Below are positions 2,583 to 9,145 of a DNA stretch of 64,000 bases, in pieces (within the stretch, counting starts at the first letter, position 1; each line of letters opens with the position of its first letter). Source of the DNA: Histomonas meleagridis 2922-C6/04-290x (taxonomy: Eukaryota; Protista; Parabasalia). The position numbers were made by a program, and so were the translations under genes. The stretch spans positions 372,001 through 436,000 of the forward strand of contig JAANOX010000002.1 in the NCBI GenBank assembly GCA_020184695.1. The letters are read 5' to 3'. The notes below the pieces were generated by a model. That model was not told where the DNA came from. It searched no databases and worked only from the letters and a program-made list of their open reading frames with translations.

Positions 2583-2590
2583 ATGGTGAT
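2583..2590. repeat. Left 8-bp target-site duplication (ATGGTGAT); right copy at 5217-5224
   Basis: Exact direct repeat immediately outside both TIRs. An 8-bp TSD is typical of hAT elements. Confidence 0.93.
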
Positions 2591-5216
2591 TAGGGTTTCC
2601 GAAAACGGTACTCGTACTTTTTAACCGTTTTTTGTCATAACGTTTAAACAGGTACAAGTACAAAAAGTGACGCATATGAAAAGTGACATGACACCCAAAG
2701 TACAAAAAGTGACATTTATATTTGTTTTATGCGTTTTTTCCGATACATTTGAGTAATTTATAAATATATTCAAATTATTTTGCATGTATATATGTTGATG
2801 AAAATATTATCAGAATACTATTTAAAAATCTATTTTAAGAGACACAATAATTTAAGATAAAAAAATTTTTTGGAGTAGACCGTTTATATGATGATCGTTA
2901 ACCGCTATTTATTGTGTAAATTGAAATGATTAAAAGATTTATTTTAAAAATAAAAATAAAAAAGATATTTATAATTAGAATAAGAATAAGAATAAGAATA
3001 AAATTAAAATAAAATACAATAGATTTTTCATCAAAAAATATTTAATTGACAGTTTCAACTCATTATGATATTAAAAATTATATCATTTCATAAAATATCA
3101 TCAAAATCAGCAATTATATTATCATATTACATAATTATTCATTTATAACAAATACACACACTTATAAAAATATATTTTAGTTGAATTTATTTAGCTTAAT
3201 AAATCAGCATTAACATAGAGAAAAGCTCTTTCAGTTGCACTTTCTTTGGACAATGCACCGCACTGGTCTGGTAAAGCATATCTTGCCATTGAAAATACTC
3301 GCTCTATGTTTGCTGAACTTGCTTTAAAACAAAAGTACTTTTCAGCAATTTTGAATGAATTTGGGAATTGTTTTGACTATATTTCCGAAATGATACAATA
3401 TTTGTATTATCTGGAATTCTAACTTTTTTAAATAGCTTGTATTCATTTGCATTTCGTGTTGCATTTCGAGATCTAGGCGAGGTGTTTATGTTATTTTGGT
3501 TAGTTTGATGTGGAATTTTTGATTTCAAGTAATTTTTAGCTTCGATATAATATTTTTTTAATTCATATGGCAAAAGCTTTTTGCCATCTAAACAAGGGTT
3601 AAGAATTGCTGCAATGGTTAGGTTATTAAGAAATTCTTCATATTTAATTAACCTTGTAAATAGTGTATTTTTTAAATTGTTGGATTGTTGAATGAATCCA
3701 CTCATATGCATTTCCTGAGTTATCTCTTGATAAATTTCCATTACTAAATCTAGGGCACAAATAAAAATATCATTTGAATCACTTTCAAGCTTTTTTGTAA
3801 TATTGCTAATTTTCGTTATATAAGGCAAAATTGCATTTAAATATATCCAATCATTGTCATTTAATTTATCATCATCTTTTATTTTTTATAATTCGATTGA
3901 CCTATCCTTAATTTAATAAAATTCGTAAATTTCCTTACGAAGTTGACATGCACGTTTGATTGAATTATATAAAGAAAGCCACCTAATTTCAATGTAACTC
4001 GGAATAATTTTACACTTTTTACCTTTCAAAGTAAGATATTGTTTGAATTGGCAATTGTTATATAAAACACTTAATTTATTGATAATTTGTTTGAGAGTTA
4101 AATCATTTGATATCCAATCAAGAAAAGCTCTATTTATAATATGAGAGCAACATGGTGTCCATTCAATGCCTGATATTTTGATTGCTTTTCTTACAGAAGA
4201 TGCACAATCTGTGCATGTACAGGCAATTTTATTTCTATCTAGGTTATAACAAGCTAAATTTTCATCCAAAATTCTGGAAATAACGCTTGATGTTCTGCTT
4301 ATATCGTCCGGAACCGTTAAACATAATAAATAATAACCACTCTCGATTGTTACCGAAATTCCAATAAAATTATAATTATACCTGATATATTCATCAAGAG
4401 AAAGGAAATAATATGGACATTGATCAAGAATACTTCTAATTTTCGATTGAATCATTAAATAAGTTTCATGGAATCTAGTTTCAAATGTCTCTAATGAAGG
4501 TAATGAATATGGAAATAATTCGGCAAACGATTTAAACTTTATTATTGAATGTGGAATTGCATTAACTGCAAAAAAATTTATTATTATTCTATCTAAATCC
4601 TTCTTCCATAATTGTGAAGTATAATGTTTTGCTTTAACATGTTTTGAAACATTCCCTGGATCTGAAGAAATATATTTGTTACACAAAGAACAAAAGCCAA
4701 TTTTACACCCAATCATCAAATAAATATAATCATGATTTTTATGTTTTTGTGCAAAAGAAAGAGTAATTGAGTTTGGTGGTTTGGGTACAATTATTTTTGG
4801 TAATTGATTCAGTCTATTAAAGTCAAAAATTTCATTAGCTTCAATAAATGGAATACTTACAATATTTTGCATCCGAAGAAATGATGTGATACCAGATCGA
4901 TTTGAGATAATCTAATAAATTTTTATCAAAATTCGAAGTTTGAATCTAAACACATGACTTTGAACTTAAAAATCAAAAATTTTGAATTCAAAAACTGCAT
5001 CATTTAAGAAATAATGCAATTTTTATCACCAAGTTTTTGAATGGTCTATTTTTAACCGGAATTTGGCGGTTAATGTACAAGTACAAGTACCTTCTTTTAA
5101 GAAAAATCGATAAACCAACCAAAAAAAAGTACTTCCAGATTGAGAGACACTTTTTGTACAAGTACTTTGCGTCACTTTTAACCGATCGTACAAGTACTTT
5201 ATTCTAGGAAACCCTA
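2591..5216 (-). mobile_element. hAT-superfamily DNA transposon, 2626 bp, both ends present, transposase decayed
   Basis: Perfect 10-bp TIRs TAGGGTTTCC (2591-2600) and GGAAACCCTA (5207-5216). Identical 8-bp TSD ATGGTGAT at 2583-2590 and 5217-5224. Subterminal AAAAGTGAC repeats (2663, 2679, 2705; inverted at 5171) and GTACAAGTAC repeats. Internal hAT transposase. Confidence 0.94.
3191..4872 (-). pseudogene. hAT transposase (BED finger, DDE, dimerisation domain), inactivated
   Basis: BED finger CSLC..HVKAKH, then SLDE, CTDCAS, CCSH (CxxH), IRWLS, DWIYL and AAILNP. The C-terminal FKASSANIERVFS...NADLLS* lies in a shifted frame ending at 3191. Two in-frame TAA stops (3913-3915 and about 3886) and a frameshift near 3380. 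Confidence 0.9.
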
Positions 5217-5580
5217 ATGGTGATAAACCAAAAGGCTTCCGGAAGATCCTTGAAAACAGAGCTCGAGATCAGTGAATAAAGCTGACTGTCGCGTGAACTT
5301 CGATGTAATTTCATCAACATTGAAATTCCAATACGACGATAAAGTTGTGAATTTTTGAATAACATGCTACACAATTTAATACATACAAATATCTGAGGCT
5401 CAAAATGGAATAAAGCAACATGTTGATAATTTGAAATAAATTGTATAGTTTACGTGCTTCTTTTTTCAAATTAATCGCTTTTTCAATGGAGTGATGTGAT
5501 GTGTGTTTGAAGTGATATGAACAAACTACAACATTTGCCAAATCTCTGTGGCTCTACAGTAACGACCATTTTATTCAAAA

Positions 5581-6590
5581 ATGTCAAGCGAAGAGCAGGC
5601 AACACAACCCAAGGAAGTTCTCTCGAATCCTTGATTCGATTCCACAAACTAAAAGCGTTTTCTTATTGGGTTCCATAGATGAAAAGGATGTCATTATATT
5701 ATTGGAAAAGACTCATTTCAATACAAATGATAATGCTTTTGAGCAAAGTAAAGATGGAGATAATACAAGTGAAGCTAAATTTTCAGATATTAAATCGATA
5801 GAAGATTTGAAAGAGAATAAAACAAATGATATTTATCATTGGGGGTTAGCTATCTTAGAGCAAGACATGGAACATAATCCCACTGCTAAGATAATATTGA
5901 TATATTCTGCCAAAGCCACTCATATTGAAAAATATGGAAAACAAAAGTCCCATTTCATAAAAGAAACACCTGAAGTTTCTCATGAAATTGTTGAATCTCA
6001 TATCAAAGAGATGTGCTCAGAAATAAGATTAAAATGGGTTCACAACATCTTATATGAAGGAGCCGAATCTGATCGTGAGATTTACAGAGAATATGATCCA
6101 AATGATATACAACAGTTTCGTCATATTACTAGAAATGAAATGGAATGGCTCTGATTTAGATTCCATGTATTTAATTGCCATAGTATATCTAAATGACATT
6201 CATTCATTACGTGATTTGAAACCAAAGGATCAACCATGGTTAAAAATGTTGATGAGAAAGATTAAAGCTGTTATATCCACGAAATATTCGGTTCATCCTG
6301 ATGAATTAAGAATATATATTCATTATCAGCCATCGCATTATCACTTCCATATTCATATCATGAATATATTAAATCCAGGATTGGGATTTTCAATTGCAAC
6401 AGGAAAAGCAATTTTACTGGATGAAGTAATCGAACAATTAAATTATATGGGAGGTGAAGGATATGAAAGAAGTACTCTATATTATGTACTTGGAAAAAAC
6501 CACGAGCTATGGAAAAGAGGCTTGAATAAAGTGGTGGAAAAGCAATTGGAAACAGAAGGAACGTCAAATATTCCTCCACAGGATAAATAA
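5581..6590 (+). pseudogene. DCS1: Scavenger mRNA decapping enzyme DcpS (HIT family), Saccharomycetaceae Dcs1/Dcs2-like, two frameshifts
   Basis: ATG at 5581 in aaaaATGtc context. Three frames join to give RILDSIPQTKSVFLLGSIDEKDVIILLEKTHF...NDIYHWGL...NPTAK...[15 protein letters not shown]...MKWNG..LDSMYLIAIVY...HPDELRIYIHYQPSHYHFHIH (HIT motif)...GKAILL...ELWKRGL. Frameshifts near 5622 and 6110. Confidence 0.9.
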
Positions 6591-6867
6591 AAAACCAATG
6601 GTTTTTTAATTTTTAAATTTGTGATTTTGGTTTTTTCATTCTTTTGCTCAAACGTTGAGACAAAAGTTCCATATTCGACTTGGAGTGAAATTCATTAAAT
6701 TATGCATGAAGTTTTAATTGGAAATGTTGATGAAAGTCAAAACGTTACAAAAACGAATTTTTATTTAGGCGTGTGACAAATAAACAGTTGCTTGGATAGG
6801 TGGAAGATTTTCGTTGTCGTAGTCATAGAATTCCATTTCTTCTTCTTCAGGTCTGCTGGTTCATTTT

Positions 6868-7556
6868 TCAACAAGAAATATCATTTCAAACAAATTTTGA
6901 TTTTAATCAAACAATTAATCCATCACTTTATGAAAGATGTGATTATGCAGCATTTTTCTATTAAATGTTTTAAATATTTACTTATAAATAATGCAAACGT
7001 TGAAGATACAGGTAAATATGCAGTTGTAGGTGGAAATGAAGAAATCATTCATTTATACTAACAAAATCATTCATTATTTAAATATGCATATGAAGCAGCA
7101 ATTGAATTTCATCGAAATTACATCTTTCATTATTTTTATGATAATAAGAAATTAATTATTTAGAAGAATTTGGAAAGCTTTGTATTTTATATAATAATTA
7201 TGAAATATTTTCATTTTTAGTTAAAGAAGAAATGAGAATCAATGATTATATTATTAATGAAGCAGCAACTATTAGAAATATTTATTTAGTTGAATGTTTT
7301 CTTAAAGATCATTCAGTTCGGCATGATATATTGGCATTTTTATCTGAATCAAGAAATATTGAAGTTGTTGAATACTTATTAAATCAAAAAGGAATTGTTA
7401 TTAATGTTGAAGATATTTATTTGTTTTAATTAAAATTTAATTTAATAATTTCTTGTTTCAAAATATTATTTTTGATTTCAAATATTTATTAGAGCATTTA
7501 TAGATGAAATTTTGGTATATTTGGAAAAAATAGAAAAGAACAATATTAATAATTAA
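6868..7556 (+). pseudogene. Degraded DUF3447-type ankyrin gene, 5'-truncated, with stops and deletions
   Basis: Fragments QEISFQTNFDFNQTINPSLYER, KCFKYLL and TGKYAVVGGNEEIIHL match the intact paralogs at 10066, 31653 and 35242. It carries the same type of spacer after INVED (7415-7490). Confidence 0.8.
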
Positions 7557-7751
7557 AAAATGAAATTATTTAATAAATAAAAATGATATTTGGTTTATTT
7601 CAATGTGTTAAATGATAAAATAATAAAACATTCTTATAGCCTATAAAAAAATATTTTCATTAAAGAATAGCATTGGATTGAATGGATATTTTTTAAGTTT
7701 AAAAATGCGAATTTGACATTTTCTTTAGTGTTTATTGAAACGAAATATTGT

Positions 7752-9145
7752 TTAATTCATAAGTCTTCCAAAGAATTCGATTCTGTTCAGTGTAAGGTAG
7801 TAGGTGCCACACCAGTTCTTATCAGTTTGTGTTAGCTTCAAATAACGGAATTGTTCTTGCTTTCCTTGAATCTCAAAAAATGCTTCTTTACTGTATCCAT
7901 TTAGTGAACCATTATTGGATATTTCATCAAGAATTGTCCAATTACTTTTGTCATTAGAACCCTCCAATTTCCAACTTTTAAGATATTGTGGACCCCAATT
8001 ATTTGAAGATTTTAATGAATATGCAGTGAGAGAAACTTTTCTATCTTTGAAATCGAATATAATAAATTGATTTACAATGTTTTGTGTACCGAAATATCCT
8101 TCATCTTGTACAATACTGCTTAATGGATATCTTTTATCATTGATAAATGAAGATGCTATCACTTCAATTGTTCCATTTGTTATAATATTTCAATTACTTT
8201 GTTTTGTGAGATGATCAAGAATTCCATTAAATTTATTTGTTCCGTCATATTTAGATAGAAAAGGTAAAAATCTCTTTAGAAATTCTTCGTCAGATCTTTT
8301 GCCTCGAATTTTTTTAAGCGCAGGCCACAGATCACCGATTTTATCTGGCGGAATTGAATCAATAATGGATGTCAATCTATCAGAATCTTCTTCTTCTAAA
8401 AATTCACTGTGAATATATTTAAATAAGACATAAAATTCTGGATTTTGTTGATATTTTCTAATAACAAAATCAAGCAATGATTTTTCATTTAAAAGTTTGA
8501 GTTTATCACATTTCAAAAACAATTCTAATTGTGACAACGAAAAATTTTGATCTTTAATTCTTCAGAATGTTTTGCTCCATATTCAATTTCTTTGTCAATA
8601 TTAACTCCTGCTTTCGTTTTGGTGTGAAGAATATTTATTAAATTGTCATTATTGATTTCAAGAGATAATTTTTCTATAAGTTCTGGATTTTTAAGATGGT
8701 TAAAAATGTTGATAAGTGGATCTTTCAAATCAATAATATTAACACTTTGTCCATGTAATAAATTCTCTAATTTATGAATTATTTCATCTGTTACAACTTC
8801 GTCAACTTTTAAAAAAATCATTTTTGGGTTTTTAGCTTTCATATTTGAAACAACAGGTGAAATAAATTCTGCAAGGAAGTCAGGTACTTTTAATACTTTA
8901 TTATTTTGAAATCGAAACTCGAAATTATTTTCATAATTTTTAAAATTAATTCTTTTTAAACCTTCTACTGAAAGTGAAAAATTCAATAAACACTTACAAT
9001 TGAAATTTTCTTTATAAGGCCTAATGCCACAATTTGATATCGATTCCATAAGTCGTAATTTATGTGAAACAATGCTAATGCAAAAAATGCCATTACAATT
9101 TTCGGAGCTAACGGTTGCCACATTTAAAAAACCGTTGGAAACCAT
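7752..9145 (-). pseudogene. BTB-like plus F5/8 type C (discoidin) domain protein, disrupted
   Basis: Three consecutive ORF pieces. AEFISPVVS (BTB-like N-terminus), then a C-terminal F5/8-C domain (FIIFDFKDRKVSLTAYSLKS...LKSWKLEGSND...FRYLKLTQTDKNWCG...LNRIEFFG). Frameshift near 8530 and an in-frame TGA at 8190-8192. Confidence 0.75.

Follow-up and report, generated by a model that had tools for sequence, protein, structure and literature searches.

A frameshifted, yeast-like DCS1 gene relic and its second copy in the genome of the parabasalid Histomonas meleagridis

The window analyzed here is a stretch of 64,000 nucleotides from the genome of the gut parasite Histomonas meleagridis, a 43 Mb genome with 28.7% GC that was sequenced for two strains with Nanopore and Illumina reads from clonal culture with E. 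coli (PMC8529796). The window encodes a Ran gene (1631-2263), DUF3447-type ankyrin genes typical of trichomonads, and a VPS9 protein whose nearest atlas clusters are those of Parabasalia. The Ran, zf-MIZ, and VPS9 proteins of the window are exact NCBI/UniRef entries, and the region lies on the 590,249-bp sequence WSYJ01000030.1 (GCA_020186115.1); GCA_020184695.1 is a second assembly. Each assembly has several further genes for exactly this Ran protein of 210 aa (L004-L008), with differing neighbors, and we did not identify a DcpS copy at any of these other loci. In the public annotation of the locus, no gene is called between Ran and the end of the retrieved region.

Downstream of Ran, on the minus strand, is a hAT-type transposon (2583-5225), recognized by its terminal inverted repeats (TAGGGTTTCC/GGAAACCCTA at 2591-2600 and 5208-5217), its transposase ORFs, and an 8-bp target duplication (ATGGTGAT) whose two copies, 2583-2590 and 5218-5225, match perfectly. 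The BED/ZBED1-like transposase is broken into two minus-strand ORFs (3913-4872 and 3304-3828), whose atlas features score 0.95-0.96 to ZBED1/BED/DUF659 clusters. The element is complete-looking, with subterminal repeats (GTACAAGTAC..., AAAAGTGACGCA), and the reads reveal variant hAT copies elsewhere in the genome. Its target duplication ends at 5225, 356 bp before the start codon of the gene described below, in agreement with the distance of about 360 bp given in a preliminary description of this DNA. Further downstream, positions 6793-7530 are occupied by a high-copy host repeat of ankyrin-family DNA (no strand assigned), with a read depth 100 to 1000 times that of single-copy sequence and with numerous joints and variable short insertions around 6940-6960 and 7140-7400.

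Between the transposon and the repeat, on the plus strand, positions 5581-6590 comprise a full-length DcpS/Dcs1 gene that translation and homology search show to be spread across three reading frames. DcpS/Dcs1 (m7GpppX diphosphatase) hydrolyses the m7GpppN cap remnants of 3'-to-5' mRNA decay, and the central histidine of its HIT motif is catalytic. Frame 1 provides the start codon (ATG at 5581) and the first nine codons, MSSEEQATQ (5581-5607), which align with the MS..EEQ start of Monosporozyma-group Dcs1; this frame ends at a TGA at 5632. The DcpS N-terminal domain and linker follow in frame 2 (~5612-6105), identified by the structure 5BV3 and by PF05652 (5.5e-24; 85 bits against a cut-off of 25; 5630-6151). 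Frame 3 resumes at 6108 (YNSFVILLEMKW) and encodes the HIT-like DcpS C-terminal domain up to the TAA at 6588-6590 (PF11969, DcpS_C, 5.3e-22; 5BV3), including an intact histidine-triad motif, HFHIH, at 6342-6356. Both the full-length DcpS gene and the intact motif had been proposed in the preliminary description, and both are confirmed here. No single uninterrupted frame encodes the two-domain protein, and the window copy is a gene relic rather than a working member of the DcpS family. GC content around the gene is 27-30%, and an A-rich context of the ATG is expected anywhere in a genome of this composition; the yeast-like start context of the preliminary description is a conjecture, as is its gut-commensal yeast source.

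At the 3' end, the stop codon of the relic lies inside TAAATAAAAAA (6588-6615 region), with TTTTTTAATT about 20 nt further on. These two motifs resemble the UAAA-type polyadenylation signal and the cleavage motif of trichomonads. Should the resemblance be real, the yeast gene would have gained host-type 3' signals.

The two main pieces of the relic were searched separately, and were joined with an X at the break for the phylogenetic trees. Among solved structures, the top match of both pieces is Dcs1 of Saccharomyces cerevisiae (5BV3), at 5.9e-48 for the frame-2 piece and 3e-57 for the frame-3 piece, whereas the DcpS structures of Chaetomium, human, and mouse score only 2e-11 to 1e-7 and 3e-25 to 8e-21, respectively. 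Since 5BV3 scores far above the other solved DcpS structures, the yeast-specific likeness of the relic is real. The relic is colinear with S. cerevisiae Dcs1 (5BV3, 6TRQ) over its whole length, with which it shares the same two domains, the HIT motif, a yeast-specific insert in the N-terminal domain, and the C-terminal tail HxLWKRGL...QLE..G, and its two pieces are ~51% and 58% identical to a protein (P0004) that is itself 97% identical to the S. cerevisiae one. The colinear and yeast-specific match to Dcs1 that had first been proposed without database searches withstands comparison with non-yeast DcpS structures.

We examined the physical linkage of the relic to its surroundings in sequencing reads. 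Three DNA runs of one study, from two samples, contain 67-89% of the 31-mers of the region. Two of these runs (X1 and X2, one per sample) were aligned as contigs to positions 4000-8400. None of the contigs that reproduce the window has a substitution, and most are also free of gaps. One X2 contig matches positions 5076-5888 with 0 differences, from the hAT end region through the first of the lesions described below. Contigs of X1 cover 5240-5945, 5948-6381 (0 differences, spanning the second lesion), and 6352-6593. On the 3' side, an X1 contig over 6572-6984 (record 5; no substitutions, 4 gap letters) reaches the high-copy host repeat, and an X2 contig over 6573-6801 also matches without substitutions. 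A few length differences of 1-2 letters occur in X1 contigs within the flanks. Read depth in X2 is 616 across the gene versus 573-603 in the single-copy flanks. The relic is thus physically continuous with host DNA at single-copy depth in two samples. The continuity with host flanks that the preliminary description wanted checked is borne out by exact contigs that join the gene to both the hAT element and the ankyrin-family repeat. Simple contamination by a live yeast, against which it had argued from the lesions, is also contradicted by these contigs.

The reads also contain a second form of DcpS, about 92-93% identical to the window copy. In X2 this form is part of a 3928-nt contig (record 12; depth 591) that aligns only from 5556 on, so that the two copies have in common a 5' leader at 5556-5580 (plus strand), and the remainder of the contig has no likeness to the window. 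X4 has the second form as an 898-nt contig over 5706-6595 with 60 substitutions relative to the window, and it is present in X7 contigs too. Its equal depth, and the loss of similarity 25 nt upstream of the ATG, point to a separate locus and not an allele. We did not find it beside the other identical Ran loci, and protein searches returned no DcpS protein of the Histomonas genome, although its proteome is in the database.

Evidence for transcription differs between the two copies. Five runs from two other studies, classified as probable RNA by the tool's guess, contain ~10% of the region's 31-mers, the level that a 92-93% identical paralogue would give by itself. Across the gene, X4 and X7, both among the probable RNA runs, contain only the second form, and the unique flanks of the window copy have no counterpart in the X4 contigs. 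Thus, the window copy appears to be silent, and the second copy is probably transcribed.

Relative to the second copy, the window copy has suffered two frameshifting deletions, which correspond to the frameshifts noticed earlier near 5622 and near 6110. In second-copy contigs there are 26 extra letters within 5600-5888. The first lesion, a loss of these 26 nt that shifts the gene from frame 1 to frame 2, is supported by read contigs and protein alignment and was placed at 5600-5612 (plus strand) from the point where frame-2 homology begins. It removes ~8-9 codons, the EFLDLVKR segment of yeast relatives. The second lesion, at 6105-6107 (plus strand), is the loss of two nucleotides (TT) and shifts frame 2 to frame 3; the TT is inserted behind 6105 in the read data of both X2 (669/1222) and X4 (21/21). 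An alternative interpretation of the second frameshift, an extra T at 6116-6118, is ruled out by the reads that show the 2-nt deletion at 6105. A probable third deletion of 6 nt is in-frame at the VIST/KYSV site (plus strand), its exact place within 6270-6293 being estimated from reads and alignment: contigs of X7 (record 26) and X4 (record 19) have 6 extra letters within 6116-6599, and yeasts have two more residues at this site, seen as a 2-residue alignment gap. Together, the 26, 2, and 6 nt account for 34 nt missing from the 1010-nt window copy, relative to a length of 1044 nt.

The pattern of substitutions was compared with 45 Saccharomycetaceae homologues. The relic retains 85% of the invariant columns, 72% of the columns conserved at 90-99%, and 25% of the most variable ones. 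This gradient indicates that most of the divergence of the relic arose under constraint. Eight residues that are invariant in the 45 homologues are changed in the relic, while even the most divergent yeasts lose 0-3, and this excess of losses would fit a later phase of decay. Compared with S. cerevisiae Dcs1, the relic differs overall by the two frameshifting deletions, the absence of 8-9 N-terminal and 2 internal codons, and these eight changed residues. Where the listed differences between the two copies could be polarized by eye against the yeasts, the window copy was more often the derived one, as with P to S at 5906 and K to E at 5858. Every lesion is confined to a single copy, and the reading frame was therefore open at the time of duplication.

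The second copy has changes of its own. A C>T difference at the position matching 5744 was recorded in one DNA run (X2) and in two probable RNA runs (X4 and X7), within a partial list of differences. Given that the X4 contig has no indel over 5706-6105, this change turns a conserved Gln codon (the Q of QSxDG; CAA in the window) into TAA in the frame shared by the copies. The second (parent) copy may therefore also be damaged, in which case no intact copy would remain. Codon changes between the copies over 5741-5923 number 13 non-synonymous to 4 synonymous, a ratio that looks neutral.

As to how the second locus arose, no A-run beyond 'taaaaaaacc' follows the stop codon, and the window copy lacks the combination that marks a processed pseudogene, a poly(A) remnant with a target-site duplication at the transcript ends. 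A variant X2 contig still aligns at 6687-6703, past the gene, which suggests duplication at the DNA level; the 5' boundary at 5556 would fit DNA-level duplication and a retrocopy alike. Like duplicated (unprocessed) pseudogenes, the window copy has a ~92-93% identical paralogue elsewhere, private frameshifts and deletions, lost conserved residues, and no transcript evidence. It differs from them in that its parent gene is foreign and may itself carry a stop codon.

The yeast affinity extends to protein collections. A search profile made from an alignment of the two relic pieces (as separate rows) and two yeast fragments recovered 1027 relatives, and the named proteins among the best 120 of these matches are all from Saccharomycotina, with no parabasalid protein among them. 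The nearest proteins are 55-65% identical, namely P0006, P0010 (Monosporozyma, formerly Kazachstania, unispora), P0011, and P0012; the relic and the unispora-group Dcs1 have in common the motifs NDIYHWGL and QDMEHNPTAK. A HMMER scan of the C-terminal piece against 1.84 billion representatives returned four matches at 1e-30 or better, and the two best of these (48% and 46% identity; P0080 is from Wickerhamomyces mucosus) group with budding yeasts in trees, indicating that there is no closer non-yeast family elsewhere. Among 20 named representatives (fungi, an alga, an amoeba, and a millipede), we did not identify a native parabasalid DcpS, and Giardia has been reported to be without DcpS (PMC3282835). 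A long-branch, yeast-like DcpS of 324 aa (P0095), encoded on a 9.3-kb contig of another assembly (GCA_015689235.1), might stem from a contaminating yeast or from an independent transfer into another organism. At only 46% identity to the window copy, it was rejected as a relative of the present case.

Phylogenetic trees place the relic among budding yeasts of the family Saccharomycetaceae. In a quick tree of 119 rows, the window sequence joins M. unispora in a clade of eight rows (SH-aLRT 98), and addition of 70 diverse representatives leaves its placement the same (SH-aLRT 96 for the small clade and 99 for the family). More careful trees recover the M. unispora clade at 99/98 and the Saccharomycetaceae including the window at 100/98 (59 rows), and place the window within an 18-row Saccharomycetaceae set at 100/100 (49 rows). 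Named outgroups were Rhizina, Saitoella, Kickxella, Quaeritorhiza, and Botryococcus (Pezizomycetes, Taphrinomycotina, Zoopagomycota, a chytrid, and a green alga). An AU test on the 49-row set rejects a position of the window outside the budding yeasts (dlnL 51.7, p 0.0075). In a separate AU test, a position immediately outside Saccharomycetaceae is not rejected (dlnL 7.9, p 0.33). The phylogeny that the preliminary description had called for thus nests the protein, its pieces joined for the tree, inside Saccharomycetaceae, with the test excluding positions outside budding yeasts rather than those just outside the family.

At the level of genus, the unispora-group proteins (P0010, P0006, P0011, and P0012) are nearest overall and sister to the relic in whole-length trees (99/98), but the N-terminal half (5612-6103) prefers Lachancea (93/83) inside Saccharomycetaceae (99/96). 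The C-terminal half (6108-6587) is inside Saccharomycetaceae as well, with the unispora group (SH-aLRT 98). This conflict between halves could be noise on a long branch, or could reflect an unsampled donor or a recombinant donor gene. The end branch of the window sequence is long, at 0.7-1.0 changes per site, 5-10 times the branches of the unispora group, and long-branch effects on its placement are possible. Given the long branch, the p of 0.33 for a position just outside the family, and the disagreement of the halves, we name the donor to family and not to genus. Judged from these sequence comparisons, a Saccharomycetaceae yeast is supported as the donor, with the Monosporozyma/Kazachstania unispora group as the best candidate over the whole length and the N-terminal half pointing to Lachancea.

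Base composition does not separate host from donor, with GC3 at 26% in the relic versus 18-33% in the host and 31% in the donor, and FYMINK content and searches of the flanks for yeast DNA were uninformative on origin. In two yeast loci, we observed the gene order SEC22-DCS1-TMA7-ARF. The relic resides in a protist genome away from this synteny, and no trace of SEC22 or TMA7 was detected within window positions 3000-9000. The missing synteny indicates that only the coding sequence was transferred or kept, and absence of the yeast gene order is normal, and expected, for a lone transferred gene.

The family identity, yeast affinity, host integration, lesions, and second copy are best explained, quite probably in our judgment, by entry of a Saccharomycetaceae DCS1 gene into the parabasalid nuclear genome as a bare coding sequence, followed by its duplication and the death of the window copy. 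Under this explanation, a DCS1-type scavenger decapping gene would have entered the host nuclear genome alone, without its yeast neighbors, and would later have been duplicated inside it. The duplicate in the window would then have decayed through loss of 26 and 2 nt (the frameshifts) and a further 6 nt and through change of eight invariant residues, consistent with its absence from the probable RNA runs. Its sister, free of these deletions and seen in the probable RNA runs, would be the parent. By analogy with Dcs1, the parent, if active now or formerly, may clear m7GpppN cap remnants. Apart from the lesions the frame is open in both copies, and conserved sites have been spared in the divergence from yeast; the gene thus probably functioned in the host for some time before it was duplicated. 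The earlier proposal that yeast DNA was acquired and is now decaying is therefore right as to yeast origin and decay. It omitted the duplication, and the relic is a degraded duplicate of a second, probably transcribed locus.

A quite different history would be one in which the gene never functioned in the host. DNA or cDNA of a divergent, unsampled Saccharomycetaceae yeast could have arrived fairly recently and been segmentally duplicated once, with both copies drifting since; on this view the long branch would reflect the history of the donor itself. The possible TAA at the position matching 5744 in the second copy, the neutral-looking 13:4 ratio between copies, and the lack of a DcpS protein in the collections, with neither copy annotated as a protein, keep this alternative alive, and it also accommodates the retention of a coding sequence without yeast neighbors or flanks. 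We nonetheless consider it unlikely. Although hundreds of yeast homologues were sampled, identity to the closest is only 57%, whereas end branches in the candidate donor clades measure 0.05-0.2; moreover, the second copy is present in probable RNA runs of two studies, and the privacy of the lesions to each copy implies a frame still open when duplication took place. Native descent is far harder to sustain. A parabasalid DcpS might look yeast-like through an artefact of rate or composition, both genomes being AT-rich and no native parabasalid DcpS having been found for comparison. This is very improbable in light of the AU rejection of positions outside the budding yeasts, the family-specific inserts and motifs that are absent from other fungal and animal DcpS, and the lack of any named parabasalid in the best 120 matches.

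The frameshifts of a living gene could be assembly errors from long-read homopolymer miscalls, given that assemblies from Nanopore and Illumina data, presumably including that of the window, were reported for this organism (PMC8529796) and that X1 contigs show differences of 1-2 letters in the flanks. However, both lesion sites are reproduced with 0 differences in independent contigs of two DNA runs, and deletions of 26 nt and 2 nt relative to the paralogue are unlike homopolymer slips; the eight lost invariant residues and the absence of the window copy from probable RNA runs also argue for a dead gene, and there is scarcely any probability left for a living one. Extremely improbable, finally, is yeast contamination or a chimeric contig, with parasite DNA wrongly linked to a gene from a yeast living in the culture. 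The likeness to a yeast family is very strong and the parasite culture was non-axenic, if the organism is the one of that study (PMC8529796), but exact contigs connect the gene with the end of a host transposon on one side and a high-copy repeat of the host on the other, its depth is that of single-copy host DNA, and it is found in two samples. Yeast synteny is missing, and the gene, with 57% identity, corresponds to no known yeast and carries disabling lesions.

Well-supported transfers between eukaryotes are few and often disputed as contamination; transfers from fungi to oomycetes are documented. Bacterial genes transferred into trichomonads have also been documented (e.g., PMC12612818, PMC10461829). 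As in known transfers into protists, the Histomonas case involves a foreign gene that lies in host DNA and whose phylogeny disagrees with that of the species; here, however, the donor is a eukaryote, from a single family of yeasts, and the product is a core enzyme of mRNA decay, neither secreted nor metabolic. We found no literature report of a yeast-to-parabasalid DcpS transfer and no literature on trichomonad DcpS, and the genome description mentions neither yeast, fungi, decapping, nor lateral transfer (PMC8529796). The case is a eukaryote-to-eukaryote transfer followed by duplication and pseudogenization, which is rare, and it is well anchored: the donor is narrowed to one yeast family, linkage to the host is proven, and two diverged copies give the order of arrival, duplication, and decay.

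The finding opens no new kind of biology. For gene annotation, it matters that the public gene set apparently includes neither of the two copies. For the parasite, the transfer points to past physical contact between its lineage and a budding yeast, and it raises the question of whether parabasalids are natively without DcpS, with the yeast gene filling a gap in cap clearance. More tentatively, and somewhat against our own expectation, a working yeast enzyme may have served host mRNA decay for a long time under fast, AT-driven evolution, been duplicated, and now be undergoing a staged loss in which the window copy is dead and the transcribed copy carries a fresh stop codon. If this is true, the locus would represent the first documented transfer of a core RNA-metabolism gene from a budding yeast to a parabasalid, and it would offer a snapshot of the whole life cycle of a transferred gene.
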